In this document: piece after piece, positions 6,901 to 60,752 of the stretch
Position numbering within the stretch: position 1 is the first letter of the stretch
How the letters are laid out: each line of letters opens with the position of its first letter
Assembly: GCA_002269645.1 (NCBI GenBank)
Contig: NIVC01000984.1
Span: 310,001 to 374,000, forward strand
Length of the DNA stretch: 64,000 bases
Direction: 5' to 3'
From: Macrostomum lignano
Taxonomy: Eukaryota
Notes under the pieces: generated by a model
Database searches by the model: none
Told to the model about the DNA's origin: nothing
The model's input: the letters and a program-made list of their open reading frames with translations, nothing else
Position numbers and translations under genes: made by a program

Positions 6901-9900
6901 AACGCAATCAGCACATGGACACACACACAGTCAGCACATGGACACACACAATCAGCACATGGACACATACGCAATCAGCACATGAACACACACGCAATCA
7001 GCACATAAAACCCTGATGAGGCCAAGCTACAAGCAAAGGCCCATACAAATTCTCATAGCCTTACCGTCCAACAGATGCTGCAACTCCTTGCTATTGGGCG
7101 TCTCCCTGCTGATGGCGTCCTTGGCCGTCTGGCCGTAGCTGTTCTCCAGGGACGGGTCGACGCCTTGCTGCAGAAATGAATGAAGGTTGCAACGCAGAGT
7201 TAGAGATTTCTAACACACCCTGAAAGGCTGGCGGTAGATAAAGAGTTCTAGCAGTGGCGGCTGAGAGCGGCTCGGGAGTGGGCAACTGGAATTCCCCATT
7301 CGTTAATCCGGTCGGGAGCCGCCAGTTACGTAACAGCAGGCAGAGAGAGCCTTGATGGTATTGGTGGGCTAACACGGGCGAGAAAGAGGGGAGAGAAGAG
7401 AGGAGAGAGCATGGTAGTGCGTCAGAATTGTGCGTCATCCATTCACGACTAGCCCACTCCCTCCCCCCTCTAAAAAATCCCAAGATTAGGAACTCCCACA
7501 CCAACATCCGAAAGCGATGAACAATAAATTCTGCCCTAGTCAGTCAATGCTGCGGTCTGCAGAGACTTAAATCAAGGAGACCTAAAATGAGAATTTTTAG
7601 TAGCAACTCTTCCCAAAATTCCACATTCTCAGACACGATAAGGCTGGCTGTAGCTTTGCAAATCCCACATTCTCAGACACGATAAGGCTGACTGTAGCTT
7701 TGCAAATCCCACATTCTCAGACACGATAAGGCTGACTGTAGCTTTGCAAATCCCACATTCTCAGACACGATAAGGCTGACTGTAGCTTTGCAAATCCCAC
7801 ATTCTCAGACACGATAAGGCTGACTGTAGCTTTGCAAATCCCACATTCTCAGACACGATAAGGCTGACTGTAGCTTTGCAAATCCCACATTCTCAGACAC
7901 GATAAGGCTGACTGTAGCTTTGCAAATCCCACATTCTCAGACACGATAAGGCTGGCTGTAGCTTTGCAAATCCCACATTCTCAGACACGATAAGGCTGAC
8001 TGTAGCTTTGCAAATCCCACATTCTCAGACACGATAAGGCTGACTGTAGCTTTGCAAATCCCACATTCTCAGACACGATAAGGCTGGCTGTAGCTTTGCA
8101 AATCCCACATTCTCAGACACGATAAGGCTGGCTGTAGCTTTGCAAATCCCACATTCTCAGACACGATAAGGCTGGCTGTAGCTTTGCAAATCCCACATTC
8201 TCAGACACGATAAGGCTGGCTGTAGCTTTGCAAATCCCACATTCTCAGACACGATAAGGCTGGCTGTAGCTTTGCAAATCCCACATTCTCAGACACGATA
8301 AGGCTGGCTGTAGCTTTGCAAATCCCACATTCTCAGACACGATAAGGCTGACTGTAGCTTTGCAAATCCCACATTCTCAGACACGATAAGGCTGGCTGTA
8401 GCTTTGCAAATCCCACATTCTCAGACACGATAAGGCTGGCTGTAGCTTTGCAAATCCGTAAATAAAGTGTTTTTGTAGCCATCAAACTGTAAGCAGAAAT
8501 TCTAATAATCGTTCTAGAAGATATGAGCTCCAAGCAATTAGCTACTCCAATTAACGGTTCTAAATCTCCTTGGCTGAGTCCCCTGTCTCTCGCTCCCTCC
8601 AAAGCTCAAACCCCAGGTGAGCAGGCGGCGGGTAGAAATTGTGGTTGGGGTTGAAGAAGGAATAGACATGGACAGTTAAATAGGAGGATGAGCAGACCGT
8701 CTTCATCCACCCACCCTGCAGACTCTTCTAATGGGCGCTCTCTGGGGACCGAGGTGACTCACCCAATTCTGGGATGAAGAGCAATACTGGAGTCTGGGCT
8801 TCGGTGTGTGCGTGTGCGTTTCTTGGAACGGTGCGAGTGTATTTATTGACAGTAGATCTGGTAGTCAGGCCTCCAAGAGGTGTGTAGGGAGGGCAGTCGA
8901 TGAAATGAAGGGTGGTGGAGGCAAAAGGGATGGAGGGAGAATGAAGGGGGAGGCAAAGCACTGAATGGAAATGAAGGGTGGGGAGAGAGGGGAGGGAAAG
9001 TAGAGAAGGGAAATGAAGGGTGGGGAGAGAGGGGAGGCAAATCAGAGAAGGGGAATGAAGGGTGGGGAGAGAGGGGAGGCAAATCAGAGAAGGGGAATGA
9101 AGGGTGGGGAGAGAGGGGAGGGAAAGTAGAGAAGGGGAATGAAGGGTGGGGAGAGAGGGGAGGCAAATCAGAGAAGGGGAATGAAGGGTGGGGAGAGAGG
9201 GGAGGGAAAGCAGAGAAGGGAAATGAAGGGTGGGGAGAGAGGGGAGGCAAATCAGAGAAGGGGAATGAAGGGTGGGGAGAGAGGGGAGGGAAAGTAGAGA
9301 AGGGGAATGAAGGGTGGGGAGAGAGGGGAGGCAAATCAGAGAAGGGGAATGAAGGGTGGGGAGAGAGGGGAGGCAAATCAGAGAAGGGGAATGAAGGGTG
9401 GGGAGAGAGGGGAGTGAAAGCAGAGAAGGGAAATGAAGGGTGGGGAGAGAGGGGAGGCAAATCAGAGAAGGGGAATGAAGGGTGAGGAGAGAGTGGAGGC
9501 AAATCAGAGAAGGGAAATGAAGGGTGAGGAGAGAGTGGAGGCAAATCAGAGAAGGGAAATGAAGGGTGGGGAGAGAGGGGAGGCAAATCAGAGAAGGGGA
9601 ATGAAGGGTGGGGAGAGAGGGGAGGCAAATCAGAGAAGGGGAATGAAGGGTGGGGAGAGAGGGGAGTGAAAGCAGAGAAGGGAAATGAAGGGTGGGGAGA
9701 GAGGGGAGGCAAATCAGAGAAGGGGAATGAAGGGTGAGGAGAGAGTGGAGGCAAATCAGAGAAGGGAAATGAAGGGTGAGGAGAGAGTGGAGGCAAATCA
9801 GAGAAGGGAAATGAAGGGTGGGGAGAGAGGGGAGGCAAATCAGAGAAGGGGAATGAAGGGTAGGGAGAGGGAAGGAATGCACAGAAGGAAATAGAAGTTA

Positions 9901-12900
9901 TCCATGTGGCAGATATGGAATAGAAATCTTACCCCGAATTTGCTACAACCAGAGCCCATTAGCTAGCTCTCACAACACAAGCTTCTAGCTTGAAGTACTT
10001 ATCTAAACCCTTCCTGCATTCGACAATCCTGTCCAATATTTGTTTCTACATTAAACTAGCAGAGATGAGATAGCCTACAGCAGTAATTAAATGGTCAATA
10101 TTGAAGCGCAGACTTTGCGCGCTGGCTCGGGCGGCACTAAACAAGAAGACTGATGGCCCATGGTGTCCGCCAGTAGCGGGCGGACTGACTCAACCGCTAC
10201 GAGCGGCGAGACTCGCGCAGAGCAAATGCAGCATCCGCTACTTTGATCTTCTCCCATCTACCCCCTCCGCTGAGAACAGGGCAGACAGCAGCCTCTATGG
10301 TGAGATTTATAGGGGCTCAGAAAAATGCGCAAGTAAGCCAGGGTATGTACGAGTAGGATTTTTTGTGCCGAATGCAAGCCAAAAGCGAAAATGGGTAGCA
10401 AAATTTGAGGTCAAACAGAGACGGAACATCATGGATGCCAGTCACTGAATTCATGCCAGTAAATGCTGGGATTAAGCCCAGTTCAAGACTTCGTGTGTTT
10501 GTTGGTAAATGTTTTTATAACACTGTGGCAGCCAAACCAATACCGGATTTACTGAATAAATACTCTCACTGTTCACTGTTCACTTTTTCTTGGGTCTTTG
10601 TCTGCTCACGAAATTCCCAATGAGCCCCGATCCAGTGACACATTCCCAATGAGCCATTGATCCACTGACACATTCCCAATGAGCCTCTGATCCACTGACA
10701 CATTCATAATGAGCCTCTGATCCACTGACACATTCCCAATGAGACTCTGATCCACTGACACATTCCCAATGAGACTCTAATCCACTGACACATTCCCAAT
10801 GAGCCTTCTGATCCACTGTCACATTCCCAATGAGCCTTCTGATCCACTGGCACATTCCCAATGAGCCTCTGATCCACTGACAACATTCCCAATGAGACTC
10901 TGATCCACTGACACATTCCCAATGAGCCTTCTGATCCACTGGCACATTCCCAATGAGCCTCTGATCCACTGACACATTCCCAATGAGACTCTGATCCACT
11001 GACACATTCCCAATGAGACTCTGATCCACTGGCACATTCCCAATGAGCCTCTGATCCACTGGCACATTCCCAATGAGCCTTCTGATCCACTGGCACATTC
11101 CCAATGAGCCTCTGATCCACTGACACATTCCCAATGAGCCTCTGATCCACTGACATATTCCCAATGAGACTCTGATCCACTGACACATTCCCAATGAGCC
11201 ATTGATCCACTGACATTCCCAATGAGCCTCTGATCCACTGACACATTCCCAATGAGCCTTCTGATCCACTGGCACATTCCCAATGAGCCTTCTGATCCAC
11301 TGGCACATTCCCAATGAGCCTCTAATCCACTGACACATTCCCAATGAGACTCTGATCCACTGACACATTCCCAATGAGCCATTGATCCACTGAAATTCCC
11401 AATGAGCCTCTGATCTACTGACAACATTCCCAATGAGCCTTCTGATCCACTGGCACATTCCCAATGAGCCTTCTGATCCACTGACACATTCCCAATGAGC
11501 CTTCTGATCCACTGACATTCCCAATGAGTCTTTAATCCACTGGCCCATTCCCAATGAGCCTTCTGATCCACTGGCCCATTCCCAATGAGCCTTCTGATCC
11601 ACTGGCACATTCCCAATGAGCCTTCTGATCCACTGGCACATTCCCAATGAGCCTTCTGATCCACTGGCACATTCCCAATGAGCCTTCTGATCCACTGGCA
11701 CATTCCCAATGAGCCTTCTGATCCACTGGCACATTCCCAATGAGACTCTAATCCACTGACACATTCCCAATGAGCCTTCTGATCCACTGACACATTCCCA
11801 ATGAGCCTTCTGATCCACTGACACATTCCCAATGAGCCTTCTGATCCACTGACACATTCCCCTGAATGCAAGCACTTATGCATGCAACTCTGAAACCAAG
11901 AGTTTCAAATTTACTCAATCTAATTTCGTGATTATTAGACTTAGTAGTTCAAAAAGAAATCGTCTTTGAGTGGCAGCCAGAGAATGAACTCAAAGAACCT
12001 GTGAGCACCAGTGAAATATACCACTGCATCAGCAGCAGCGCCGCCCCCTGAGCACACAAAGCACTCCAAGCCATTAATGGACTAAGTGGGGATTGAGTAA
12101 AGCTAAGGACCATGGAGGAAAATCGCCAAAAAGGACGGCATTGAGAGACAGAAATAAGAGAGGAAAAGAGAGACTGCAGAAGCAAAACAGGGGGTGGAAG
12201 AAGGCCAAAAGGCTGGCAGTGCAGCCTGACAAACACTCAAGTTGCTCTGGGCCATTGCCTCTCGCTTTCACCACCAGTGCACTCCATTGGGGTCATCCAG
12301 GGTGACCCGACTCGGTTGGCGGCTTCCCAGTTCAACCCCAGACCCGTCTGAGCCATGGCTAAATACAGTAGAGTTATTAGTAGAGTGACCAATTGTCCCT
12401 TCCCGTGTAGCCCCTGACAGTGAGTTACTGATTGACAGGTGTCCATTTTTACTTTGAGAAATTCAAATCCACATGTAAGTCTTCTCTTAGAGCGATTCTT
12501 AAAAAATCCCGCAAATTTGCTTAGAATTCCTGGAAAGTTTCTTAGAAATTACTGCAGCGATCTATAAAATTCATAAAGGGGTTCTTAAAATTCATGAAGG
12601 AATTTTTAGAATTCATAGAGGGATTTTTAGAATTCATAGAACGATTCTTAGAATTCATCGAGGGATGACTTCGTGTGTTTGTCGGTAAATGTTTTTATAA
12701 CACTGTGGCAGCCAAACCAATACCGGATTTACTGAATAAATACTCTCACTGTTCACTGTTCACTTTTTCTTGGGCCTTTGTCTGCTCACGAAATTCCCAA
12801 TGAGCCCCGATCCAGTGACACATTCCCAATGAGCCATTGATCCACTGACACATTCCCAATGAGCCTCTGATCCACTGACACATTCCTAATGAGCCTCTGA

Positions 12901-15900
12901 TCCACTGACACATTCCCAATGAGACTCTGATCCACTGACACATTTCCAATGAGCCTTCTGATCCACTGACACATTCCCAATGAGCCATTGATCCACTGAC
13001 ATTCCCAATGAGCCTCTGATCCACTGACAACATTCCCAATGAGACTCTGATCCACTGACACATTCCCAATGAGCCTTCTGATCCACTGGCACATTCCCAA
13101 TGAGCCTCTGATCCACTGACACATTCCCAATGAGACTCTGATCCACTGACACATTCCCAATGAGACTCTGATCCACTGGCACATTCCCAATGAGCCTTCT
13201 GATCCACTGGCACATTCCCAATGAGCCTTCTGATCCACTGGCACATTCCCAATGAGCCTCTGATCCACTGACACATTCCCAATGAGCCTCTGATCCACTG
13301 ACATATTCCCAATGAGACTCTGATCCACTGACACATTCCCAATGAGCCATTGATCCACTGACATTCCCAATGAGCCTCTGATCCACTGACACATTCCCAA
13401 TGAGCCTTCTGATCCACTGGCACATTCCCAATGAGCCTTCTGATCCACTGGCACATTCCCAATGAGCCTCTAATCCACTGACACATTCCCAATGAGACTC
13501 TGATCCACTGACACATTCCCAATGAGCCATTGATCCACTGACATTCCCAATGAGCCTCTGATCTACTGACAACATTCCCAATGAGCCTTCTGATCCACTG
13601 GCACATTCCCAATGAGCCTCTGATCCACTGACACATTCCCAATGAGCCCCTGATCCACTGACATTCCCAATGAGTCTTTAATCCACTGGCCCATTCCCAA
13701 TGAGCCTTCTGATCCACTGGCACATTCCCAATGAGCCTTCTGATCCACTGGCACATTACCAATGAGCCTTCTGATCCACTGGCACATTCCCAATGAGCCT
13801 TCTGATCCACTGGCACATTCCCAATGAGCCTTCTGATCCACTGGCACATTCCCAATGAGCCTTCTGATTCACTGGCACATTCCCAATGAGCCTTCTGATC
13901 CACTGGCACATTCCCAATGAGCCTTCTGATCCACTGACACATTCCCAATGAGCCTTCTGATCCACTGACACATTCCCAATGAGACTCTAATCCACTGACA
14001 CATTCCCAATGAGCCTTCTGATCCACTGACACATTCCCAATGAGCCTTCTGATCCACTGACACATTCCCAATGAGCCTTCTGATCCACTGACACATTCCC
14101 AATGAGACTCTAATCCACTGACACATTCCCAATGAGCCTTCTGATCCACTGACACATTCCCAATGAGCCATTGATCCACTGACATTCCCAATGAGCCTCT
14201 GATCCACTGACAACATTCCCAATGAGACTCTGATCCACTGACACATTCCCAATGAGCCTTCTGATCCACTGACACATTCCCAATGAGCCATTGATCCACT
14301 GACATTCCCAATGAGCCTCTGATCCACTGACAACATTCCCAATGAGCCTTCTGATCCACTGGCACATTCCCAATGAGCCTTCTGATCCACTGACACATTC
14401 CCAATGAGCCTTCTGATCCACTGACATTCCCAATGAGTCTTTAATCCACTGGCCCATTCCCAATGAGCCTTCTGATCCACTGGCCCATTCCCAATGAGCC
14501 TTCTGATCCACTGGCACATTCCCAATGAGCCTTCTGATCCACTGGCACATTCCCAATGAGCCTTCTGATCCACTGGCACATTCCCAATGAGCCTTCTGAT
14601 CCACTGGCACATTCCCAATGAGCCTTCTGATCCACTGGCACATTCCCAATGAGACTCTAATCCACTGACACATTCCCAATGAGCCTTCTGATCCACTGAC
14701 ACATTCCCAATGAGCCTTCTGATCCACTGACACATTCCCAATGAGCCTTCTGATCCACTGACACATTCCCCTGAATGCAAGCACTTATGCATGCAACTCT
14801 GAAACCAAGAGTTTCAAATTTACTCAATCTAATTTCGTGATTATTAGACTTAGTAGTTCAAAAAGAAATCGTCTTTGAGTGGCAGCCAGAGAATGAACTC
14901 AAAGAACCTGTCAGCACCAGTGAAATATACCACTGCATCAGCAGCAGCGCCGCCCCCTGAGCACACAAAGCACTCCAAGCCATTAATGGACTAAGTGGGG
15001 ATTGAGTAAAGCTAAGGACCATGGAGGAAAATCGCCAAAAAGGACGGCATTGAGAGACAGAAATAAGAGAGGAAAAGAGAGACTGCAGAAGCAAAACAGG
15101 GGGTGGAAGAAGGCCAAAAGGCTGGCAGTGCAGCCTGACAAACACTCAAGTTGCTCTGGGCCATTGCCTCTCGCTTTCACCACCAGTGCACTCCATTGGG
15201 GTCATCCAGGGTGACCCGACTCGGTTGGCGGCTTCCCAGTTCAACCCCAGACCCGTCTGAGCCATGGCTAAATACAGTAGAGTTATTAGTAGAGTGACCA
15301 ATTGTCCCTTCCCGTGTAGCCCCTGACAGTGAGTTACTGATTGACAGGTGTCCATTTTTACTTTGAGAAATTCAAATCCACATGTAAGTCTTCTCTTAGA
15401 GCGATTCTTAAAAAATCCCGCAAATTTGCTTAGAATTCCTGGAAAGTTTCTTAGAAATTACTGCAGCGATCTATAAAATTCATAAAGGGGTTCTTAAAAT
15501 TCATGAAGGAATTTTTAGAATTCATAGAGGGATTTTTAGAATTCATAGAACGATTCTTAGAATTCATCGAGGGATGACTTCGTGTGTTTGTCGGTAAATG
15601 TTTTTATAACACTGTGGCAGCCAAACCAATACCGGATTTACTGAATAAATACTCTCACTGTTCACTGTTCACTTTTTCTTGGGCCTTTGTCTGCTCACGA
15701 AATTCCCAATGAGCCCCGATCCAGTGACACATTCCCAATGAGCCATTGATCCACTGACACATTCCCAATGAGCCTCTGATCCACTGACACATTCCTAATG
15801 AGCCTCTGATCCACTGACACATTCCCAATGAGACTCTGATCCACTGACACATTTCCAATGAGCCTTCTGATCCACTGACACATTCCCAATGAGCCATTGA

Positions 15901-18900
15901 TCCACTGACATTCCCAATGAGCCTCTGATCCACTGACAACATTCCCAATGAGACTCTGATCCACTGACACATTCCCAATGAGCCTTCTGATCCACTGACA
16001 CATTCCCCTGAATGCAAGCACTTATGCATGCAACTCTGAAACCAAGAGTTTCAAATTTACTCAATCTAATTTCGTGATTATTAGACTTAGTAGTTCAAAA
16101 AGAAATCGTCTTTGAGTGGCAGCCAGAGAATGAACTCAAAGAACCTGTGAGCACCAGTGAAATATACCACTGCATCAGCAGCAGCGCCGCCCCCTGAGCA
16201 CACAAAGCACTCCAAGCCATTAATGGACTAAGTGGGGATTGAGTAAAGCTAAGGACCATGGAGGAAAATCGCCAAAAAGGACGGCATTGAGAGACAGAAA
16301 TAAGAGAGGAAAAGAGAGACTGCAGAAGCAAAACAGGGGGTGGAAGAAGGCCAAAAGGCTGGCAGTGCAGCCTGACAAACACTCAAGTTGCTCTGGGCCA
16401 TTGCCTCTCGCTTTCACCACCAGTGCACTCCATTGGGGTCATCCAGGGTGACCCGACTCGGTTGGCGGCTTCCCAGTTCAACCCCAGACCCGTCTGAGCC
16501 ATGGCTAAATACAGTAGAGTTATTAGTAGAGTGACCAATTGTCCCTTCCCGTGTAGCCCCTGACAGTGAGTTACTGATTGACAGGTGTCCATTTTTACTT
16601 TGAGAAATTCAAATCCACATGTAAGTCTTCTCTTAGAGCGATTCTTAAAAAATCCCGCAAATTTGCTTAGAATTCCTGGAAAGTTTCTTAGAAATTACTG
16701 CAGCGATCTATAAAATTCATAAAGGGGTTCTTAAAATTCATGAAGGAATTTTTAGAATTCATAGAGGGATTTTTAGAATTCATAGAACGATTCTTAGAAT
16801 TCATCGAGGGATTCTTAGAATTCAATGAGGGATTCTTAGAATTCATAGAGGGATTCTTAGAACTCATAGAGGGATTCTTAGAATTAATCCTGGGTTTCTT
16901 AGAATTCATAGTGTTTCTTATAAGTTTTAAAGGGATTCTTAGAATGAATTCACCTAGGGATTCTTAGAATTCATATAAAAATTCCTATAAATCATAGAGG
17001 GATTCTTAGAATTCATAGAGGGATTCTTAGAATTTATAGAGGGATTCTTAGAATTCATAGAGAATTCTTAGAATTCATAGAGGGATTCTTAAAACTCATA
17101 GAGGGATTCTTAGAATTAATCCTGGGTTTCTTAGAATTCATAGTGTTTCTTATAAGTTTTAAAGGGATTCTTAGAATTCATGGAGCAGTTATTTAAAATT
17201 CCGTACGCATTCTTTGATTTTCCTAGGGGAAACATTGGATCAAAGCGAACCAAAAGTGCTTTTGTTAAAATCTTCATTCATCAAAGCATAAAAAATCAAA
17301 TAATGGCATTCCAAGAACCGACTTAAAAACTGTCACGCCGGAAGGCAGCACCTGACTAAAATAGGAAAGAAATTGATCTCGCTCACCTCGAGCAGAAATT
17401 TGACAGCCTCCAGCTGGCCATGGATGGCGGCCAAGTGCAGGCAGGTGCCGTGCTCGGTCATCCGGTTCGGGTTCGCCCCCTGCTGGCCCAGCAACAGCCT
17501 GGAATTGGCCGGGAGAGAGCAGATCAGGCGCTGTTCTGCATGCAGGTTCAAGCATTGCATAATTGCATGCTTCTGGCTCTCATTTCCCATTTCGCTACAC
17601 GGTTCCGCCTCCCCATCAATCAATCACAGTTTAGCAGCGGAAGGGCCTGCGGCATCGATTTACAGTGCAGTGCAGCCTCATGAGATTCGGGACCCAGCAG
17701 CCGCTAGTGTCAAACTGTTTCATTCGCACTTCAGAATCTAAGAGTTCTCTCCCAGAATCTCAGCAACCCTCTCTCAGAATCTCAGCAACCCTCTCTCAGA
17801 ATCTCAGCAACCCTCTGTCAGAATCTCAGCAACCCTCTCTCTCAGAATCTCAGGAACCCTCTCTCAGAATCTCAGCAACCCTCTCTCAGAATCTCAGCAA
17901 CCCTCTCTTAGAATCTCAGCAACCCTCTCTCAAAATCTCAGCAACCCTCTCTTAGAATCTCAGCAACCCTCTCTCAAAATCTCAGCAACCCTCTCTTAGA
18001 ATCTCAGCAACCCTCTCTCTCAGAATCTCAGGAACCCTCTCTCAGAATCTCAGCAACCCTCTCTCAGAATCTCAGCAACCCTCTCTCAAAATCTCAGCAA
18101 CCCTCTCTTAGAATCTCAGCAACCCTCTCTCAGAATCTCAGCAACCCTCTCTCAGAATCTCAGCAACCCTCTCTCAGAATCTCAGCAACCCTCTCTCAAA
18201 ATCTCAGCAACCCTCTCTTAGAATCTCAGCAACCCTCTCTCAGAATCTCAGGAACCCTCTCTCAGAATCTCAGCAAAACTCTCTCAGAATCTCAGTAACC
18301 CTCTCACCCAGAATCTCAATAACCCTCTCTCAGAATCTCAGCAACCCTCTCTCAGAATCTCAGCAACCCTCTCTCAGAATCTCAGCAACCCCATCTAAAT
18401 GAAGGCAGTTAGCTCAAGGCACGCCCCCAAAAGTACACCAAATCACCTGAGCACATCCACGTGGCCATTCTTGGCGGCCAGATGGAGGCAGGACTGCGCC
18501 TGGCCTCGCTGCTCGTCTTCCAAGTCTTTGTGCAGCAGGCAGGAGACGGACTTCAGCGACAGCAGTAGCTGGGCAATCTGCAGGTTTTTCCCGACAGAAA
18601 TGAAGTGAAAATGAAGCTCCGCTAACAAAGTGGAAACAGAAGACGAATTTCTCACCGAAAATCTGCCGAATTCGCAGGCGACATCAAAGGCGGTGCGGCC
18701 GTCCTCGGTGCGCAGCATCGGGTCCGAGTTGCTGCACAGCAGCGTCTTCACCTTGAAGGATAAAATTGAAATAACAGTAACTTTGACTAGATATGCTTAC
18801 TGTCCTACTGATAGTAATGTACTAAGCATAAGACAGTAGTCGCTCACGAATGCAAAGATAAGCAAATTGGAATAAAAATCCCTGAGAACGGAAATCCTTA

Positions 18901-27400: not shown

Positions 27401-30400
27401 CCTCAATCATTACTGATATCCTCAATCATTACTGATATCCTCAATCATTACTGACATCCTCAATCATTACTGACACTATCAATCATTACTGACATCCTCA
27501 ATCATTACTGACATCCTCAATCATTACTGACACTATCAATCATTACTGACACTATCAATCATTACTGACACCCTCAATCGTTACTGACATCCTCAATCAT
27601 TACTGACATCCTCAATCCTTTTGCCTTTAACCCCCTGTAAGCCCGATGTAGCTCAATAAAAACTTGCGATAGTGTAGCAACTAACTAGTTTCAGAAAAAT
27701 TTTTTTATAGCAGAACACCATCAGCTGGTAATTAAATTGCTCCGTTGGGACTTCAGCTATCTTTAGCTGCTATCGGCCTCCAAAGCTGCTAACCCGTCCA
27801 GTCAAAGCTGTTTAGGTTAAAAGTGGGTCAGTACGAACCAACTAGGTTCTAGTTGGCTAGGGGCGCGAACCTGGTGCACCAATGTTGCAGACAGTCGCTA
27901 GGCTGTGCATTCCAGTGCAGCGCCCTATTTGACAATTTTAGTTCACTTGTACTCAATGTTTGCACCAATATTACCTGCTGCAGTAACTATGGGGATCACT
28001 ATGGGAATAACTATGGGCATAACTATGAGAATAACTATGGGATAATTATGGAATAACTATGGGAGAACTAAGGGAGAACTAATGGGGATAATTATGGGAT
28101 AACTATAGGGATAAATATGGGGATAACTATGGGATAAGAATGGAATGACTATGGGATAATTATGGGATAACATGGGGATAACTATGGGGACAACTATGGG
28201 GATAATTATGGAATTGACTGTGGAATAGCTATGGAATAACTATCGGATAACTATGGGATAACTATGGGGATCACTATGGGGATAACTATGGAATAACTAT
28301 GGAATAACTATGGGATAACCATGGGATCTCACACTGCGTTTGCATACCCTTGACTTTCTCTCTTCCCCTCTTTCTCCCCTTCAAACTTCAATTGAGTTGC
28401 ATCTTCTAATAGTTAATGATTCTAGAAATGAGCTTTATCACCAGAAGGAAGTAGCATTGACTGACTAGATGGATGATGCATTACAGATGAAGCTAAGACA
28501 GCCTCAGAAACCAATGCCAATTGATCCGGGCCTCAATTCTCCTCCCTGTGTGCGCCCAGAGTCAACAGAGGACACGCGCGCAGAGACGAGAATGAGAAAT
28601 AAGCTTAAGCGCTGCCAGCCTAACGCCAAAGGATAAGATTCAGAAGGATTAGCCGCGCGTAATTGAAGGCTAGCGATGGCGAGACTGGGAGCTGGGCAAT
28701 ATGACGGGGGTGAAGACTGCTAGAGCAAACACTGGCGTACATGCTCGTGTTTCTGCTTTACTATAACGTACTTTGCCGCGATAGCCTGGCATGCAAATTT
28801 TTTGAATCGTCTGGGCTGCAGACAGGGAGGGAGGGAGCGAGACTGCCTTCTGAAGTCACTCGTGCACTGCAGCGTGTGCACCATCATGGATCACTTTCAC
28901 CGTTCTCTCTCTCTCACTGTTTGTATCGCAGTTTTCTCACTAGCTGGCTACTCATGGCTTCACATGTACTTTATGCCTTTTATCACCACTCTGCAACCTC
29001 ACTAACCTAATATAATCTCAGTCCCATCTCTCTCATCTCAGTCCCCCCTCTCTCTCATCTCAGTCCCCCCTCTCTCTCATCTCAGTTTCCTCTCTCTCTC
29101 ATCTCACTCCACTCTCCCGCATCTCAGCCTCCCTCTCATCTCAGTCCCCCCTCTCTCTCATCTCAGTTTCCTCTCTCTCATCTCATTCCCCTCTCCCTCA
29201 TCTCAGTCCCCCTCTCATCTCAGCCCCCTCTCATCTCAGCCCCCCTCTCATCTCAGTCCCCTCTCTCTCATCTCAGTTTCCTCTCTCTTATCTCATTCCC
29301 CTCTCCCGCATCTCAGCCCCCCCTCTCATCTCAGTCCCCCTCTCTCTCATCTCAGTCCCTTCTCTCTCATCTCAGTCCCCTCTCCCGCATCTCAGCCCCC
29401 TCTCATCTCAGTCCCCCCTCTCTCTCATCTCAGTTTCCTCTCTCTCATCTCAGCCCCCCCTCTCATCTCAGTCCCCCTCTCTCTCATCTCAGTCCCTTCT
29501 CTCTCATCTCACTCCCCTCTCTCTCATCTCAGTCCCTCTCTCATCTCAGCCCCCCTCTCATCTCAGTCCCCCTCTCTCACATCTCAGTCCTCCCTCTCAT
29601 CTCACTCACCTCTCTCTCATCTCACTCCCCTCTCTCTCATCTCACTCACCTCTCTCTCATCTCACTCCCCTCTCTCTCATCTCACTCCCCTCTCTCTCAT
29701 CTCATTCCCCTCTCCCGCATCTCAGCCCCCCTCTCATCTCACTCCCCTCTCTCTCATCTCAGTCCCTCTCTCATCTCAGCCCCCTCTCATCTCAGTCCCC
29801 CTCTCTCACATCTCAGTCCTCCCTCTCATCTCACTCCCCTCTCCCTCATCTCAGTCCCCCTCTCATCTCACTCCTCTCCCTCTCATGTCAGTTTCCTCTC
29901 TCAATTCCCTCTCTCTCATGTCAGTTTTCTCTCTTAATTCCCTGTCTCTCATCTCACTCCTCTCTCTCCCTCTCTCATCTCACTCAACCTCCCCTCTCTT
30001 ATTATTCCCTAAAATCCGACCGGACTCGCTAAGCTGCATCAAGGGTATTTTCAGCCGACCTTAGTTCTTAGTTCTATTTACTACTTACTGAATGAAGTCA
30101 ACTTTTCCCAGACAACTATTGCAGTTCACATCGCAGAGAATGAGTGCTCTGCTGCTCTGCTCACATGGGTGCTATCGATAAATATTGCAGTTTGACTTCT
30201 TTGCCAATATGCTCGAGAGATGGAGAGGGAGAGCGAAAGAGCACGGAGGTGGTCATAAATTTTGGCCATCCAAGGGTTGATGCGGCATCCTGATGTTTGA
30301 TTAACTCGGCAAAACTTTTATACTTCACTGTTGCTAACTACTCTACTCTTGATAGTAGGCAATAGAGCTTTTGACTAATAGATTAAAATTCGATAATTAT

Positions 30401-34912: not shown

Positions 34913-35299
34913 CTTGTCACCGACTCGCTCGATTCATGACCACATGCAGACCTAATTATTGTGTGGCGCACGGGCCTGGGTTTGTTCTGCTTCTCGGGCC
35001 CTCATTGGCTGGTGCCTGTTCACAGCTCGCATTTTCCAATTCAATTCTGTGCCAGCGCTGAAAGTCGCGCGCGTGTGGCGATTTTTTCTAATGAAAAACT
35101 GACCAGTTAACTTAGGTATTGAGAGGGTAATTTGCGGCAAGTACTTCATCCTGCGAGAGCCATAGCTTACCAAATGGGTTCAATACAAAGGGAGAGTCGG
35201 CGTTGCCTAAATCTGTGTCAGAGTTGCCTAAATCTGTCGGAGTTGCCTAAACCTGCGTCAAGGTTAATTTGATCTGTGTCAGGGTTACGTAAATATGTG

Positions 35300-36835
35300 T
35301 CAGGGTGTACCAAAGCAAGTGTGTCAGGCTGAGAAAGCGAGCGTGTTAGGGTGAGAAAGCGAGTGTGTCAGGGTGGCAAAGCGAGTGAGTCAGGGTGGCA
35401 AAGCGAGTGTGTCAGGGTGAGAAAGCGAGTGAGTCAGGGTGAGAAAGCGAGTGTGTCAGGGTGCACCAAAGCGAGTGTGTCAGGGTGCACCAAAGCGAGT
35501 GTGTCAGGGTGCACCAAAGCGAGTGTGTCAGGGTGCACCAAAGCGAGTGTGTCAGGGTGCACCAAAGCGAGTGTGTCAGGGTGTACCAAAACGAGTGTGT
35601 CAGGGTGCACCAAAGCGAGTGTGTCAGGGTGGCAAAGCGAGTGTGTCAGGGTGCACCAAAGCGAGTGTGTCAGGGTGCACCAAAGCGAGTGTGTCAGGGT
35701 GGCAAAGCGAGTGAGTCAGGGTGCACCAAAGCGAGTGTGTCAGGGTGGCAAAGCGAGTGAGTCAGGGTGAGAAAGCGAGTGTGTCAGGGTGAGAAAGCGA
35801 GTGAGTCAGGGTGAGAAAGCGAGTGAGTCAGGGTGAGAAAGCGAGTGTGTCAGGGTGCACCAAAGCGAGTGTGTCAGGGTGTACCAAAGCGAGTGTGTCA
35901 GGGTGCACCAAAGCGAGTGTGTCAGGGTGGCAAAGCGAGTGTGTCAGGGTGCACCAAAGCGAGTGTGTCAGGGTGTACCAAAACGAGTGTGTCAGGGTGC
36001 ACCAAAGCGAGTGTGTCAGGGTGCACCAAAGCGAGTGTGTCAGGGTGCACCAAAGCGAGTGTGTCAGGGTGGCAAAGCGAGTGAGTCAGGGTGAGAAAGC
36101 GAGTGTGTCAGGGTGGCAAAGCGAGTGAGTCAGGGTGAGAAAGCGAGTGAGTCAGGGTGAGAAAGCGAGTGTGTCAGGGTGGCAAAGCGAGTGTGTCAGG
36201 GTGAGAAAGCGAGTGTGTCAGGGTGCACCAAAGCGAGTGTGTCAGGGTGTACCAAAACGAGTGTGTCAGGGTGCACCAAAGCGAGTGTGTCAGGGTGTAC
36301 CAAAACGAGTGTGTCAGGGTGCACCAAAGCGAGTGTGTCAGGGTGCACCAAAGCGAGTGTGTCAGGGTGCACCAAAGCGAGTGTGTCAGGGTGGCAAAGC
36401 GAGTGAGTCAGGGTGAGAAAGCGAGTGTGTCAGGGTGGCAAAGCGAGTGAGTCTGGGTGAGAAAGCGAGTGTGTCAGGGTGTACCAAAACGAGTGTGTCA
36501 GGGTGCACCAAAGCGAGTGTGTCAGGGTGCACCAAAGCGAGTGTGTCAGGGTGCACCAAAGCGAGTGTGTCAGGGTGCACCAAAGCGAGTGTGTCAGGGT
36601 GGCAAAGCGAGTGAGTCAGGGTGAGAAAGCGAGTGTGTCAGGGTGGCAAAGCGAGTGAGTCAGGGTGAGAAAGCGAGTGTGTCAGGGTGCACCAAAGCGA
36701 GTGTGTCAGGGTGCACCAAAGCGAGTGTGTCAGGGTGCACCAAAGCGAGTGTGTCAGGGTGCACCAAAGCGAGTGTGTCAGGGTGCACCAAAGCGAGTGT
36801 GTCAGGGTGCACCAAAGCGAGTGTGTCAGGGTGAC
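35300..36835. repeat. 22/24-bp minisatellite GTGTCAGGGTGCACCAAAGCGAGT
   Basis: Intergenic, direct periodicity. Confidence 0.96.
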
Positions 36836-38837: not shown

Positions 38838-41744
38838 TTACCACTCCATGATGTCGTTCTTGCTCCACTGGTACACTCCGCCTCGCTTGCGAAACATCAC
38901 CTCGTCGAAGCCGCTGGCACAGATGGCGTTGGCGACCCCAACGTCCAGGATACTGCGGGAGGGCTCCTTGCGGCCGCGGGTGCAGTCGAGGAAGCGCATC
39001 TGCGGGATTGTTGGTTGACTAACCCGTAAACCCGTTCTAGATCGTCGAGATATTCAACGATTTTAACATATGGTTCGAAATATCATCTAATGATAGCAAA
39101 TGACGTAATAAATCCAAAATGACGTCATCAAGAAGTATAATATGATGCAATAAATAGCGAATGACGTTGTTGATTACAAATTACGTCTTCACCGGTGACG
39201 TCGCCAAATTGTCAATGACGTCATCAGCTAGCAAACCCCATTGCAAGGACCCCTCTAGAAGCAGTAGCGCACCCGCTCATCCAGTATGAGGTAGCTGTCG
39301 CGCATTTTCTCGTTACTCTCCGGCACCAGGCACTCCACGCGGCTGTGCCTGTCAAGGAAGCTGCGAAACTGTTCATCGGTGACCACAAAAGTCTCGGCGT
39401 GGCGCAGGCTGTCCTCGCCGCAGTTCTCGCCGCCGATTAGGAGGCACTGGAAGACTTTCCAGCGGCACGGGTTGAGATCCAGGATTTGATCAGCCATGTC
39501 CTCCTGCCAGTTGTGCGTGTTGACAACGGTGTTGATTTTGAAGGCCACCCGGTAGCGAGCGCACCATTCGCTGATCTGGTAAAGCTTATCAAGGTGGTGG
39601 CTCCGGGGCGCGTGGCGTCCGATGGCCCGGTTGGTGGCCTCGTCGAAGCTGTCGCAGGACACGGCTAGGATGTCCAGCCACTCGCCTGGAGAGTTTTGGT
39701 ACGGTTGGGTATTGTTGCAACTCTGTCTTAGCGTCTGTCTCAGTATTAGTCTTAGCAGCGTCTGTCTCAGTATCTGTCTTAGCAGCGTCTGTCTCAGTAT
39801 TAGTCTTAGCAGCGTCTGTCTCAGTATCTGTCTTAGCAGCGTCTGTCTCAGTATCTGTCTTAGCAGCGTCTGTCTCAGTATCTGTCTTATCGTCTGTCTC
39901 AGTATCTGTCTTATCGTCTGTCTCAGTATCTGACCTAGCGTCTGTCTCAGTATCTGACCTAGCGTCTGTCTCAGTATCTGACCTAGCGTCTGTCTCAGTA
40001 TCTGACCTAGCGTCTGTCTCAGTATCTGACCTAGCGTCTGTCTCAGTATCTGACCTAGCGTCTGTCTCAGTATCTGACCTAGCGTTTGTCTCAGTATCTG
40101 ACCTAGCGTCTGTCTGCAAGTCTTAGTGTCTGTCACAGTTTTCATCGGGGGCAGAGCAGCTCACTCACCATAGGTCTGGAACCATTCCTCGGTGATGAGG
40201 CTGCCGTTGCTGACGATGCTGACGCTTGGCAGGCCGAGAGTCTCCTTGCAGAAGCGGACCATCTCGCCAAGCAGGCGACCCCGCTGTTCGAGGAACGGCT
40301 CGCCGCCTGAGAAGTTTACCTTTTGCATGCCTGCGGGTGGTTACATAGTTTCATGCTGGGTTTATTTTTTGTGTGTAGAGTGTGCATATGCACCTTAAAT
40401 TTTAAAATTGCACCCTGAAATTGAAATTTAGGTGCGGTTTAGGTGCAGTCTCATAACTTATTTTTCTATTAAAGCCTCATTTGCACTGCCTTCAAACAAG
40501 AAAAGAGAAATTGCACTTTAAGCCTTAAAATCGCACCATGAAATTGAGCATAGGAGCATAGGGTGCGATTTTGCACATTGTCTCTGGCGAAAAAGAAAAC
40601 CCTGGTTTCATGCTTTTACTATACTACTGACAGCGTTGGTCTACGCACGGGCGCCTTGGCTGTTTAATGGGCACCGCTGCTCCCAGTCCCACAGGTGCTT
40701 CAATGGGCGGCGCTGCTTCCTGTCCCACAGGTGCTTCAATGGGTGCCGCTGCTTCCAGTCCCACAGGGTGCTGCACTGCTCCCAGTCCCACAGGTGCTTC
40801 AATGGCGCCGCTGCTCCCAGTCCCACAGGTGCTTCAATGTGGCCGCTGCTCCCAGTCTCACAGGTGCTTCAATGGGCGGCGCTGCTCCCAGTCCCACAGG
40901 TGCTTCAATGGGGCCGCTGCTCCCAGTCCCACAGGTGCTTCAATGGGTGCCGCTGCTCCCAGTCCCACAGGTGCTTCAATGGGGCCGCTGCTCCCAGTCC
41001 CACAGGTGCTTCAATGGGCGGCGCTGCTCCCAGTCCCACAGGTGCTTCAATGGGTGCCGCTGCTCCCAGTACCACAGGTGCTTCAATGGGGCCGCTGCTC
41101 CCAGTCCCACAGGTGCTTCAATGGGGCCGCTGCTCCCAGTCCCACAGGTGCTTCAATGGGGCCGCTGCTCCCAGTCCCACAGGTGCTTCAATGGGGCCGC
41201 TGCTCCCAGTCCCACAGGTGCTTCAATAGGTGCCGCTGCTCCCAGTCCCACAGGTGCTTCAATGGGTGCCGCTGCTCCCAGTCCCACAGGTGCTTCAATG
41301 GGCGCCCGTAGCCCGGTGCTTAAAATGGAGCTCACCGTCTGCAAAGTGCAAAGTAAATTAAAATACCATGGGAACAACAATCGAACCAGCCTTACCAGCC
41401 TCCTGCAGCATCCGCAGGCCTCGCTTAGCTTCCTCCAGCGGCAGAACAAACGAACTAATTGCCGTGTGAAAGCAGAAGCCACACTTATAATTGCAACGCC
41501 TGGTGAAGTGATAGTTGACGCTCACCGGCACCACAGACTCTGGCGGGGCGGAGGCGGCTCGTGGCTTCTCAGCTTCATCGTTTGTATCTCTGCCAGCGTC
41601 CAATGTACGCCTGAATATAAATCCGCGTACATTGGCAAGAGCCAGCTGACCCAGGTGACCCAGATGAGTCAGAGCGATTTTAACCAGCGTAATCAAACTC
41701 GATGGGAAGCTGCCCTCGATATTGTTAAACAAAACTATTGGCAT
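38838..41744 (-). CDS. RSAD2: Viperin (radical SAM ddhNTP synthase), complete, 361 aa
   Basis: Exons 41744-41396, 40330-40169, 39685-39273, 38999-38838 total 1086 nt, all GT-AG and in phase. Motifs: [21 protein letters not shown] (CxxxCxxC), [91 protein letters not shown]-stop. Hydrophobic N-terminal segment present. Confidence 0.97.
39720..40130. repeat. 24/27-bp minisatellite GTCTGTCTCAGTATCTGACCTAGC
   Basis: Fills viperin intron 2. Confidence 0.95.
40672..41305. repeat. 35/36-bp minisatellite GCCGCTGCTCCCAGTCCCACAGGTGCTTCAATGGG
   Basis: Viperin intron 1. Confidence 0.95.
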
Positions 41745-41818
41745 GTCTAGATAATATTAAACTGATCAATGGATATTTATATCAGAGATTTCAACAAACA
41801 CGAAAGCTGCTATGGTGG

Positions 41819-42369
41819 TGACCATCCGTCGCGTCCAGCCTCTGTGTATATATATACATTTTCAGGCGGTGGGAAGTTGAGCTTGGAATTTCCAAGAAAG
41901 CGCCACCGCAACACACATGATGAACAAGTACGCTGTGCGAGGGTCTACGGTCCGTAATTTTTTTCGGTTTCCAAAAAATCCTAAGATTTCTTGGAAATTT
42001 AGTTGCGGCGAGCGGTATCCGCTGTGCTAACCTCTCCCTCCGCTTATTTTTAACAATCTAGCGGGCCCCGACCAACCACTGACCGAGTGCATCGCGTTGC
42101 CGCTAAGTTAAGCCCTGGATTGATGGAAATCACGTGATCTTTCTTTCTCTCTGAGCTGCACTCTCTATGCTTGAATGTAGCGTAGCCCTATCCGTCATTA
42201 AGCGCACTTCACTGGTTGAAATTTCCAGGAAATAATCGGCGAGATGGGGGAACGAAAAATAAACTACGCTCGTAGATAGCATAGCACTCCTCACTCCGCG
42301 GGGGGTGGGGGGCTGGTTTGCAATGTACATTCCCTCTTGTCTCTCGGACCTGTTTTTTTCTTGGAAATT
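41819..42369 (-). promoter_or_regulatory. Putative viperin promoter: 4 STAT/GAS sites, 1 ISRE core, TATA-like box
   Basis: TTCYTGGAAATT at 41887-41898(-), 41988-41999(+), 42220-42231(-) and 42358-42369(+). GAAACCGAAA at 41962-41971(-). TATATATATA at 41847-41856, with a TCA initiator-like site near 41819. Confidence 0.6.
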
Positions 42370-42906
42370 CAGTTAATTCAGCCGGACGAGCGCTTGGCCA
42401 TAGGAGAGAGCATGAACTCGCAGCTAAATGCCAATAAGGTTACGTTTATGTACTTACTACAAGCTGTTGAAACCGCGGATTTTGAACTCGTGGAATTCCA
42501 ATCCCCAGAACTATTTTTCCTGACATTTTTAATTCTGAAATCAAATTCTAACAAAAAATTGTCAATAGTTGGATAGAGGTAAAAATGGTAACCAACCAGG
42601 TATCTGAACTCTTAACGCATGCGTGGGAAAACTCCGGCCTCTGTTCTCTACGTCCCTTGGGCCTTGGGTCCTTAAAAATTGTCTTTCCTCTCTCGCTTCT
42701 TTTCTTTTTCTCTCGTCTCGTTTCTGCTGTCTCCTCTCTCATTCTCGGTAGTGAGTTTATGATGAGTGCAAATTTGGTGTCATTTGGTTGAGCGGTTTGC
42801 GAGTCCGTAACAAGCTTAGTACACACACATACACACATACAGAGTTTTCGTTTTTATATGTACCGTATAGGAGATAGATTAGTAGTCCATATATCTAGAT
42901 ATCTAG
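42057..42906 (+). mobile_element. Possible non-autonomous Helitron-like (Lep1/DINE-type) element
   Basis: A|TCTAGCGGGCCCCG at the left and CTAG|T at 42903-42907. Core AAATTTGGTGTCATTTGGTTGAGCGGTTTG followed by a (CA)-rich microsatellite and TTTTCGTTTTTATA near the right end. Boundaries are uncertain. Confidence 0.4.
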
Positions 42907-44045
42907 TGTTCTGCACTGTACTGCATTCTGGTAAATTCGTTCATCTTAGTAGATGGTTCAAAAAACTTCAAAAAAGTTTTTAAAATAAGACAAAATAACA
43001 GTTTAATAGCTTAATGTCTGTACCTAATACCTAATGCCATCGCCATTAGTTGTGATAAGTATTTAACAGAAAAATAATTGTATTTGATGTCATATGACTA
43101 ATCACCGATACTCTCAATAGCATTGCATAGTAGATAAAAAAAAACAAGACTTGATAGCAAAACAATCCAAGCAGAGATAGAAGAAGGTATTAAACGGCTT
43201 AGTGTTGCATGGAAAGAATAATTTTTTAGGATATTAGCCGCTTGAAAACGTTACCAAGGCCAAGAAGCGTCCTAGAGTCAACTTGGGTGGCCCCAAAGTC
43301 ACTTTAGAGTCGGTACAGGTAATAAAGGTGAAATATGAAAGAAGTGACTCTACTAGACGAACGACTCTAAAGCAACGAGATGTCACGTTAAAAGTCGCCT
43401 AAGAGTCAAATTTGAGCGTTTTATTGCCCGCGACCCTGAAACGACTCTCGGGCAGTGCAAGTCACTCTAGGGCCGTAGAGTCACTGTAGAATCACCGAGT
43501 TGCAACTAAAGCGCAAGCACAATGACTCTTGAACGACTTTTCGCGACTCTTTTCACGACTCTGCAACTCACGCGATGAGCTCGTGACTCAAGAGTCGCCT
43601 CTCCGTTGCATTGCAGTCGTTCGAGTGGTTGAAAAGTTACAAGAGTCGCTAGAATCACTGGTGAGTTGTTTGCAATAAAATGGTAAAGTTTTCAAAGGGC
43701 TAAATCTTCAGGATAAAATTAAAATTAGGCATTCATTACCGAAACCTTCTGATCATTTAACAGCTCAACAAACCCAGAAGTAATGAATTGTTTGCGAGTA
43801 CCAGAAAGCCACAGTAAATAATGAACAAAAACACATACAGTTAATGAACGCAGTGAACAGTGTAACAAAGAACCAGTGCTTGTTTAGGATCTAAAAAAGA
43901 AAGCAGATCAACAGCCACTACATAGAATATCTAGTCAAGAGGACGAATGACTTAAGTTGAACAACACAGGCTTAAGTTATTTAATTAAAGTAGAGATCGC
44001 GAAATCCCGGGATCAGAAAAAAATAATCAATACCAATATACCTCG

Positions 44046-44290
44046 TACGAGGGGGTGTCAGGAAAGTTCGGTCATTTAAAAATGACCAACTCAGCTGCAA
44101 ACTTATTTGGTGTAATTTTAAAGCGATAAAGTAGATAAAAAGAGATGGTTTGTTCTTATAGAGCCATCATCAGCCTTCCAGACAGCTTTCTCAACAGTCT
44201 CTACCTGTAGCAATGCACTTCTCCCTTCACTTGAGCATCCCGTCAATCGACCATGAAAGAGACTGCGCCGAACTTTGTCCTCCATATGAA
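44046..44290 (-). mobile_element. 3' fragment of a mariner element
   Basis: Mariner-type end TACGAGGGGGTGTCAGGAAAGTT at 44046. The minus strand reads IDGMLK*REKCIATG, resembling the mariner transposase C-terminus. Confidence 0.5.
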
Positions 44291-44495
44291 TCCCTGCTCT
44301 GGCATACTTGCCAAATGTATAATTTATTACTAGCGTAGAAAGAAGAAATCTGCCGCTTTAAAATGACAGCAATGTTATGCTTGTAGTTATATTAGCCAGA
44401 TCCCGGGATCCAGGGATTTGCGATCCCTACGCGTACTTTTGAAGATGATGAATTGGAAGCCACCAGGTACCTACTGCTCAGAGCTTCCAGACCTA

Positions 44496-47813
<3,318 letters not shown>

Positions 47814-59609: not shown

Positions 59610-59743
59610 AGTTGCTAGCTTCAGTTTTAGAGCACCAGATCATTTCTAGCCTGTGTAGCAGTAATTATTCAACCACACCCATGGCGCATTCTATACTTGG
59701 TATTCTATACCAAGACCAAGACCATTCTAGACCAATACATGCA

Positions 59744-59808
59744 CCCTAACCCTAACCCTAACCCTAACCCTAACCCTAACCCTAACCCTAACCCTAACCC
59801 TAACCCTA
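59744..59808 (-). repeat. Interstitial telomeric tract (TTAGGG)10
   Basis: Ten perfect CCCTAA units plus CCCTA on the plus strand. Confidence 0.95.
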
Positions 59809-60752
59809 TCCTGCAAGAGAGTTTTTCTAAACACAACTTTCAAGTGATCATCAAGTTTCATGTCTTTTAGGGGCATTCAGCAACCAAGATTTTTGAAGAA
59901 ATATAGCAGACCATAGGAGACTTTTGCCCATCTTATGAGACAATTTGCTACTGGGCTATTGCTATTTGCAATGGCAAAGAAGACCTTGATGACAAGCCAC
60001 GCAGTAGACAACCAACAAGTGCTTGGACTGACAGCCTGGTGAGTTAGGTGGAGGCAGCCATGCTGCAGGACTGGAGACTGACCACCAGGCAGCTGGCTGA
60101 TGCCATAGGGGTGTCCTACAACTTAGTTCATAAGATCCTGACCAAGGACCTTGGATGGGCAAGGTCTGTGCCAAGTGGATGCCACATCTGCTCACTGACA
60201 ATCAGCAGGCTCAGCAGGTTGCCATGTGCGCATCCAACCTGTAGCGGTGTCAGTGGGAGGGCATGGCATTCCTGCGTGCAGGCCAGGTTCTCCACAACCT
60301 CAAAGGCCATCTGGAGCATTGGTCAATTTAAGGTCATGCACGTGACTTTCTTTGACCAGGAGGGTCTGTTGTTTGATCAGCCTGTGCCAGTGAGGCAGAT
60401 GGTCAATGGTGATTTCTACCTGTCAGTTCTAGTGAAAGTTTGGCATGCCATTCGGGACAAAGGCCTGCATTTCACATGGCTGGCCTGATTCTGCTTTATG
60501 ACAACACAGCCCTATACCAAAAGCAAAGCGTGCTAGCTACGATCAAGTTGTACGGATAGGAAATTCTTCCACATCCATTTTATTCCCTGGACTTAAGTCC
60601 ATGCAACATTTTCCTTTTCCCTCAAATCAAGGAGTCAATGTGAGGCCAGCGTTTCAGTGCAAAAGAAGATGTGAATCGGGCCTACAAGGCTGGCATTGTT
60701 GCCATGACAAACAATGGCATGATTGCAGGCATTGATGGGCTAGTGCAGCGTT

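Follow-up and report, generated by a model that had tools for sequence, protein, structure and literature searches.

Results

Upstream of the viperin (RSAD2) gene of the free-living flatworm Macrostomum lignano, a conserved 13-nt block, TTTCYTGGAAATT, recurs four times within 483 bp, at 143-625 nt from the ATG. The sites are genuine, non-randomly clustered and peculiar to the DNA upstream of viperin. Together they probably make up a functional binding-site array in the viperin promoter. We regard it as an evenly balanced call that the ~950 bp upstream of the gene are its own TATA-containing promoter, with four predicted STAT sites and one IRF-type element. All positions below refer to the window, the whole 64-kb stretch of DNA that was analysed, and the features are as follows.

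41744-41396, 40330-40169, 39685-39273 and 38999-38838, minus strand: viperin exons, with the ATG at 41744
41745-42700, minus strand: conserved proximal upstream block from the three-copy comparison, putative promoter
41819-41821, minus strand: inferred candidate initiator, TCA (-77 to -75), ~30-35 nt downstream of the TATA box
41847-41856, minus strand: candidate TATA box, TATATATATA (-112 to -103 from the ATG at 41744)
41887-41899, minus strand: site c1, TTTCTTGGAAATT (-155 to -143 from the ATG), forward on the gene strand
41960-41972, minus strand: ISRE/IRF-E-like core, GGAAACCGAAAAA (-228 to -216), 14 bp downstream of c2 on the gene strand
41987-41999, plus strand: site c2, TTTCTTGGAAATT (-255 to -243), reverse relative to the gene
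42220-42232, minus strand: site c3, TTTCCTGGAAATT (-488 to -476), forward; the fully palindromic copy
42246-42259, plus strand: degenerate IRF-half-site-like element, GGGGGAACGAAAAA, adjoining c3
42357-42369, plus strand: site c4, TTTCTTGGAAATT (-625 to -613), reverse relative to the gene

A non-random cluster of 13-mers upstream of viperin

A sequence-only reading of this DNA, in which the motif search was post hoc and followed the identification of the gene, had placed the 12-mer TTCYTGGAAATT at 41887(-), 41988(+), 42220(-) and 42358(+). All of these coordinates are correct, as is the full palindrome ATTTCCAGGAAAT at 42221-42233 (site c3). The four matches to TTCYTGGAAATT are the only ones in the 64-kb window and all lie within 41887-42369, against an expectation of 0.03; none of 100 dinucleotide shuffles reached four. 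No further copy of TTTCYTGGAAATT was found in the window outside the viperin upstream region. From c1 to c4 the orientation alternates, and the spacing is irregular (101, 232 and 138 bp).

Statistics were run after masking of tandem minisatellite, which makes up about half of the window. The masked window holds 0.43 matches per kb to the general motif TTCNNNGAA, close to the earlier estimate of ~0.2 per 600 bp, and four of them fall in the 956-bp promoter (Poisson P = 9e-4), a number reached in 1 of 2000 Markov simulations. The narrower pattern TTCYNRGAA, at 0.34 per kb after masking, likewise has four matches in the 956-bp promoter (P = 3.5e-4), and here no simulation out of 2000 reached four. 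Some 12-mer is repeated at least three times in 71% of 600-bp windows. When an unbiased 12-mer scan of the window was restricted to words with at least three occurrences per 600 bp and irregular spacing, the promoter word and one GA-rich low-complexity tract were recovered. The promoter word was the sole complex 12-mer with irregular spacing; all other repeated words belonged to a tandem array or to GA-rich low-complexity sequence. The cluster observation is stronger than first stated, because the exact 13-mer is unique to the viperin promoter in three gene copies.

The viperin gene, its neighbours and its core promoter

The identification of the gene as viperin was borne out. It is a complete gene at 38838-41744 (-) with four exons and canonical GT-AG introns, and its 361-aa product is 100% identical to M. 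lignano PAA73965.1 (contig NIVC01000984.1, GCA_002269645.1). The product carries the radical-SAM motif CxxxCxxC as CNYKCGFC and is 60-73% identical to fish, amphibian, bivalve, sea star and amphioxus viperins, with E values down to 1e-144. Toward viperin, the upstream order is a MARVEL-domain gene, NDUFB6, DPM1 (last exon 44496-44927) and 2.75 kb of intergenic DNA, with all genes on the same strand; a large ankyrin/SAM-domain gene follows downstream, also on that strand. None of the listed neighbours is an immune gene. Two further M. lignano viperin loci (L001 and L002) have the same gene order as the window locus, and the arrangement of NDUFB6, DPM1, viperin and the ankyrin/SAM gene on one strand is kept in all three copies (L001, L002 and L004).

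The TATA box and TCA proposed from the sequence were found at the coordinates listed above, and both are where a core promoter would be expected. The TATA box TATATATATA is conserved in 3/3 M. lignano gene copies. A better-looking alternative, TATAAAT at -37, was rejected on finding that the other two copies do not conserve it (GATGTAAAT). In a transcript from a related species (L003, protein 87% identical) the N-terminus differs, and its 25-61 nt 5' UTR does not align. An Rfam scan of 41000-45000 gave no RNA family match. The viperin start site may be more distant, since 38.8% of M. lignano genes are trans-spliced and some genes are polycistronic, and DPM1 precedes viperin by 2.75 kb in the same orientation. 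In those M. lignano genes for which it has been assayed, DNA reaching up to 2 kb from the start site gave reporter expression in the expected tissues.

Comparison of the three M. lignano copies and the question of repeats

In 3/3 M. lignano viperin loci the upstream DNA has the TATA box, the ISRE and all four 13-mers; at the two further loci, nothing similar occurs elsewhere in 22 kb. The 13-mer has no match in 8 viperin loci of other animals. Across the three M. lignano copies, variable columns make up 12/892 of the proximal block versus 63/1679 of the distal intergenic DNA, where large indels also occur; the proximal block is ~2.8-fold less variable. This lower variability would fit either constraint or gene conversion. 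The copies are 97-98% identical, with no substitution observed in the motifs versus ~1 expected, and site conservation among them is therefore uninformative. A search with the exon-1 ORF for congener genomic contigs returned no Macrostomum match, self included. The distal intergenic part of L002 has an insertion of ~1.2 kb (~7048-8257, corresponding to window ~43473), far upstream of the conserved block.

A tandem or transposon repeat was considered as the source of the cluster and rejected: the sites are irregularly spaced and in both orientations, and their flanks are 3-12/30 identical, bar one c2/c3 flank (17/30). The earlier concern that the 12-mer could be a passive part of a common repeat was checked and did not materialize, as the flanks are mostly unrelated and the rest of the 64-kb window is without copies.

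The window is itself rich in repeats. Tandem minisatellite with units of 11-48 nt covers 30.5 of 64 kb and is mostly intronic (for example 5042-7006, 10613-14770, 35296-36833 and 46105-47303), and repeat-based findings in the M. lignano genome need array masking. A perfect (ACCCTA)x11 interstitial telomere-type repeat lies at 59743-59808 in an AT-rich stretch. The ORF at 60048-60485 (+) has a weak mariner-type transposase DDE match (PF01359, E = 6e-4, below the curated cut-off) and is probably a decayed transposon. Identical ORF translations at ~14861-15594 and ~16098-16694 mark a local segmental duplication in an intron of the ankyrin/SAM gene, each copy of which carries TTCCTGGAA and TTCTTAGAA.

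STAT-type palindromes as the best fit to the sites

All four copies fit the STAT5-type pattern TTCYNRGAA, with TTC and GAA half-sites and a 3-nt spacer; three read TTCTTGGAA, which we take to be the classical beta-casein STAT5 site, and one reads TTCCTGGAA. The conserved block extends to a longer palindrome, TTTC-N3-GAAA (TTTCnnnGAAA). The in vitro optimum for Drosophila STAT92E is TTTCCCGGAAA.

Two other site types were tried and rejected. A heat-shock element (TTCnnGAA, 5-bp register) has a 2-nt spacer where these sites have 3 nt, and the promoter has no match to TTCNNGAA or GAANNTTCNNGAA. Strict kappaB sites, GGGRNWYYCC, also have no match in the promoter, and c1 is the only copy to give a 9/10 match, TGGAAATTCC. 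As predicted binding sites, the four copies fit a STAT (STAT5-type) palindrome better than a heat-shock element, a strict kappaB site or a dispersed repeat. We consider STAT the best candidate for the predicted binding factor, with doubt and confidence in about equal measure.

Further motifs were noted in and around the cluster. Site c1 lies within a perfect 15-bp palindrome, CTTGGAATTTCCAAG (41882-41896), that also holds the kappaB-like GGAATTTCC; it may be a dual-factor site. Between c2 and c3, a perfect E-box palindrome of the MITF/TFE/USF type, TCACGTGA (42130-42137), adjoins a lone TGGAAAT half-site (42124-42130) and is conserved in 3/3 M. lignano gene copies. A Su(H)-like CGTGGGAA is found at 42622-42629.

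A single ISRE-like core and a possible composite module

The sequence-only reading had also described an ISRE on the sense strand between the two proximal copies. The element GGAAACCGAAA is indeed present on the gene strand (-) at 41972-41962, and the ISRE/IRF-E core GAAANNGAAA is matched by GGAAACCGAAAAA at 41972-41960. The ISGF3-type 3' extension (GAAANNGAAACT) is absent, with AA rather than CT following the core, and the pattern RAAANNGAAAS has no match in the promoter. One ISRE core in 956 bp compares with 0.25 per kb elsewhere (P = 0.21, Poisson; P = 0.12, simulation). A single core is present, but significance is not reached by the core alone (P about 0.1-0.2).

The degenerate GGGGGAACGAAAAA is offset from c3 by the same distance as the ISRE is from c2. 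Segments around c2 and c3 are identical at 28/43 positions overall, and the flank on one side at 17/30, for which the empirical P is 7e-4 per comparison and ~0.009 after 12 comparisons. The two flanks have TTTTTCG(G)TT..CC in common, at equal offset from the 13-mer; beside c2 this shared block is the ISRE core, and beside c3 it is the degenerate GGGGGAACGAAAAA. These matches are no more than suggestive of two inverted copies of a ~43-bp composite module that would combine an IRF-like and a STAT-like element.

Discussion

Other explanations for the cluster

The sites could be bound by a different GGAA/TGGAAA-recognising factor, either of the Rel-homology class (NF-kappaB/NFAT-like), of the ETS type or specific to flatworms, which we judge unlikely; the promoter may still be immune-inducible if so. 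TGGAAA occurs six times in the 956-bp promoter (P = 1.4e-4); one of these is the solitary TGGAAAT at 42124, and another is part of the ISRE. The near-match to kappaB, TGGAAATTCC, overlaps c1 inside a perfect palindrome, and a conserved ATT at the 3' end renders the site asymmetric. Rel-homology factors number seven in planarians, and our literature search returned no statement on STAT or JAK in flatworms. Set against these points, strict kappaB matches in the promoter number zero, the 3' CC half-site is confined to c1, and a monomeric GGAAA factor fails to explain why TTTCY (positions 1-5) is kept in 4/4 copies. Even if the sites are truly of STAT type, they might serve developmental, tissue-specific or growth-factor control and not antiviral, interferon-like induction. 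Sites of the STAT5/STAT92E type mediate responses to a wide range of cytokines and growth factors, and the GAS-rich, ISRE-poor layout is unlike that of type-I-interferon targets. Viperin, however, has proved inducible by virus or dsRNA in every animal tested, namely oyster, Nematostella and amphioxus, and a TATA-type promoter with an adjacent IRF-type core fits an inducible gene. Non-antiviral control seems to us distinctly unlikely.

That the copies are neutral relics of small local duplications, such as an inverted ~43-bp segment, and have no regulatory role is the explanation to which we give least credence. The 28/43 identity of the module common to c2 and c3 speaks for it, as does the extreme tendency of the M. 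lignano genome to form local repeats, and conservation among copies that are 97-98% identical proves nothing to the contrary. Flanks apart from the c2/c3 module, however, match at chance level (3-12/30). A 13-mer that is exact or nearly exact while its surroundings have fully diverged is the signature of selection on a short block. If the copies were relics, it would further be a coincidence that they match a well-defined palindromic factor consensus, and another that they lie just upstream of the TATA box; the proximal block also varies less than the distal intergenic DNA does. With these alternatives in mind, we return to the STAT-type reading of the sites.

A proposed circuit and its immune context

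In the circuit that we propose, an infection or nucleic-acid sensing signal would activate a STAT-like factor, possibly through a secreted cytokine-like factor. The four sites would be bound by one dimeric factor, for which a STAT like STAT5/STAT92E is the likeliest candidate, and the IRF-type element (GAAACCGAAA) beside the second site might allow an IRF to act together with it. Occupation of the four sites would switch on viperin, which would then produce the chain-terminating nucleotide ddhCTP. The interferon-independent STAT/IRF circuit suggested in the sequence-only reading is partly supported, by the site cluster and the STAT fit among other points; the ISRE is without statistical weight alone. 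A role for the IRF element and antiviral inducibility are plausible. A more specific version, in which flatworm viperin would be driven mainly by cytokine-type STAT signalling and not by IRF/ISRE, through an inverted two-copy module of a fixed-offset IRF half-site/ISRE and a 13-bp STAT site, is possible at best and on the doubtful side; such a composite IRF/STAT module would be previously undescribed.

RIG-I-like receptors have been kept in M. lignano, along with six or more Mx genes (PMC8476169, PMC11789081). IRF genes are known from other flatworms, namely SmIRF in Schistosoma mansoni and a diverged IRF3/4-like gene in Schmidtea (PMC2194728, PMC13563047). In the planarian S. mediterranea, that diverged IRF3/4-like gene is the only one, accompanied by seven divergent Rel-homology factors, and the best-studied Platyhelminthes seem to be without clear IRF3 and NF-kappaB. 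Among known binding sites, the promoters of poly(I:C)-induced genes in Nematostella contain STAT, IRF, NF-kappaB and ETS motifs. The premise that interferon-type cytokines are strictly vertebrate, on which the original interpretation had drawn, no longer goes uncontested, having been challenged for oyster and amphioxus.

The concept of an interferon-like viperin circuit is already established in molluscs, cnidarians and amphioxus; what is new here is the phylum. If viperin is STAT-driven in M. lignano, this would point to an 'interferon-stimulated-gene' programme in Platyhelminthes and would imply an undiscovered flatworm antiviral cytokine. It would extend the 'interferon-like response without interferon' of oysters, cnidarians and amphioxus to this phylum and help to trace the coupling of viperin to STAT/IRF signalling back to early animals. 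For the rest of the regulon, the exact 13-mer offers a genome-wide search key. Reporter transgenesis is established in M. lignano (PMC5730564), one of the few flatworms for which it is routine. Should the sites work, they would offer a compact (<1 kb) promoter inducible by infection or nucleic acid in such an animal, and with it an innate-immunity reporter. The DNA upstream of viperin is a genuine candidate inducible immune promoter, and one that lends itself to testing.

Comparison with viperin promoters and STAT targets of other animals

Viperin loci of seven species were scanned: Takifugu, Pinctada, Crassostrea virginica, Pecten, Asterias, Acanthaster and Branchiostoma. In Takifugu, the positive control, the scan recovered the vertebrate arrangement already known: two ISREs in 305 bp, among them GAAACCGAAAC, an absence of GAS, and a head-to-head CMPK2. 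The Takifugu ISRE core at -143, GAAACCGAAA, is the same core as in the M. lignano ISRE. Pinctada viperin has three ISRE-like elements at -384 to -410. Nothing comparable was found within 1 kb of the ATG in C. virginica, Pecten, Asterias, Acanthaster and Branchiostoma, where, as in all of the invertebrate scans, the true promoter may lie beyond unannotated 5' UTR introns. Single GAS-like sites lie near the ATG in three of the six other invertebrate viperin loci. The layout is absent from the other loci scanned, and the design of four 13-mers is therefore Macrostomum-specific and not a shared ancestral layout. Two features of the compared loci were noted in passing: amphioxus (L008) and pufferfish (L009) both have viperin head-to-head with CMPK2, a gene of the thymidylate-kinase family, and Pinctada (L011) has a second radical-SAM gene at 28578-29555, ~9 kb downstream of viperin, which is possibly a tandem viperin paralogue.

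The vertebrate RSAD2/viperin promoter is driven by ISGF3/IRF through ISREs. The earlier statement that vertebrate viperin is induced through sites like those of M. lignano is right as far as ISREs are concerned, but Takifugu has two ISREs and no GAS, as against four GAS-like sites and one ISRE in M. lignano. The two share the gene and the ISRE core GAAACCGAAA. The vertebrate gene has a pair of ISREs but no GAS, and CMPK2 diverges from it, whereas in M. lignano the ISRE is without the 3' CT, the GAS-like sites number four and DPM1 is in tandem. The vertebrate-type layout (at least two ISREs and a divergent CMPK2) is thus not found in M. lignano, where there is a single ISRE core and the upstream neighbour is DPM1, in the same orientation as viperin.

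Among lophotrochozoans, the oyster Crassostrea gigas has a pathway that leads from cGAS/STING-TBK1-IRF through the interferon-like protein CgIFNLP to ISGs including viperin (PMC8218723, PMC5869526). Induction of viperin as an antiviral gene follows there from IRF and a secreted factor resembling a cytokine, with no canonical interferon involved. The oyster belongs to another phylum than M. lignano, and its pathway was derived from RNAi and protein assays, not from promoter anatomy; the C. virginica viperin locus is without a comparable site cluster.

The amphioxus viperin promoter is reported in a 2026 preprint to be activated by BjSTATa/BjSTATb via predicted STAT sites, as verified by mutagenesis (bioRxiv 10.64898/2026.08.17.745176). 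Amphioxus and M. lignano thus have in common an invertebrate viperin with several STAT-type sites no more than 2 kb upstream. Amphioxus is a chordate in which STAT function has been demonstrated, whereas in M. lignano the four identical 13-mers are predicted sites. The amphioxus gene also differs in lying head-to-head with CMPK2, and a single strict TTCNNNGAA turned up when we scanned the 1 kb next to its ATG.

Targets of Drosophila STAT92E, such as Socs36E, vir-1 and the Tot genes, carry clustered TTCNNNGAA sites, and vir-1 is induced by virus through JAK/STAT without interferon. Like the M. lignano region, these promoters have homotypic clusters of 3-nt-spaced STAT palindromes, and the fly optimum TTTCCCGGAAA matches TTTCnnnGAAA. 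To our knowledge, insects lack viperin and IRFs, and we know of no adjacent IRF-type element at STAT92E targets. Collectively, the predicted STAT-rich, ISRE-poor layout upstream of M. lignano viperin resembles insect and amphioxus STAT targets more than it does the vertebrate viperin promoter.
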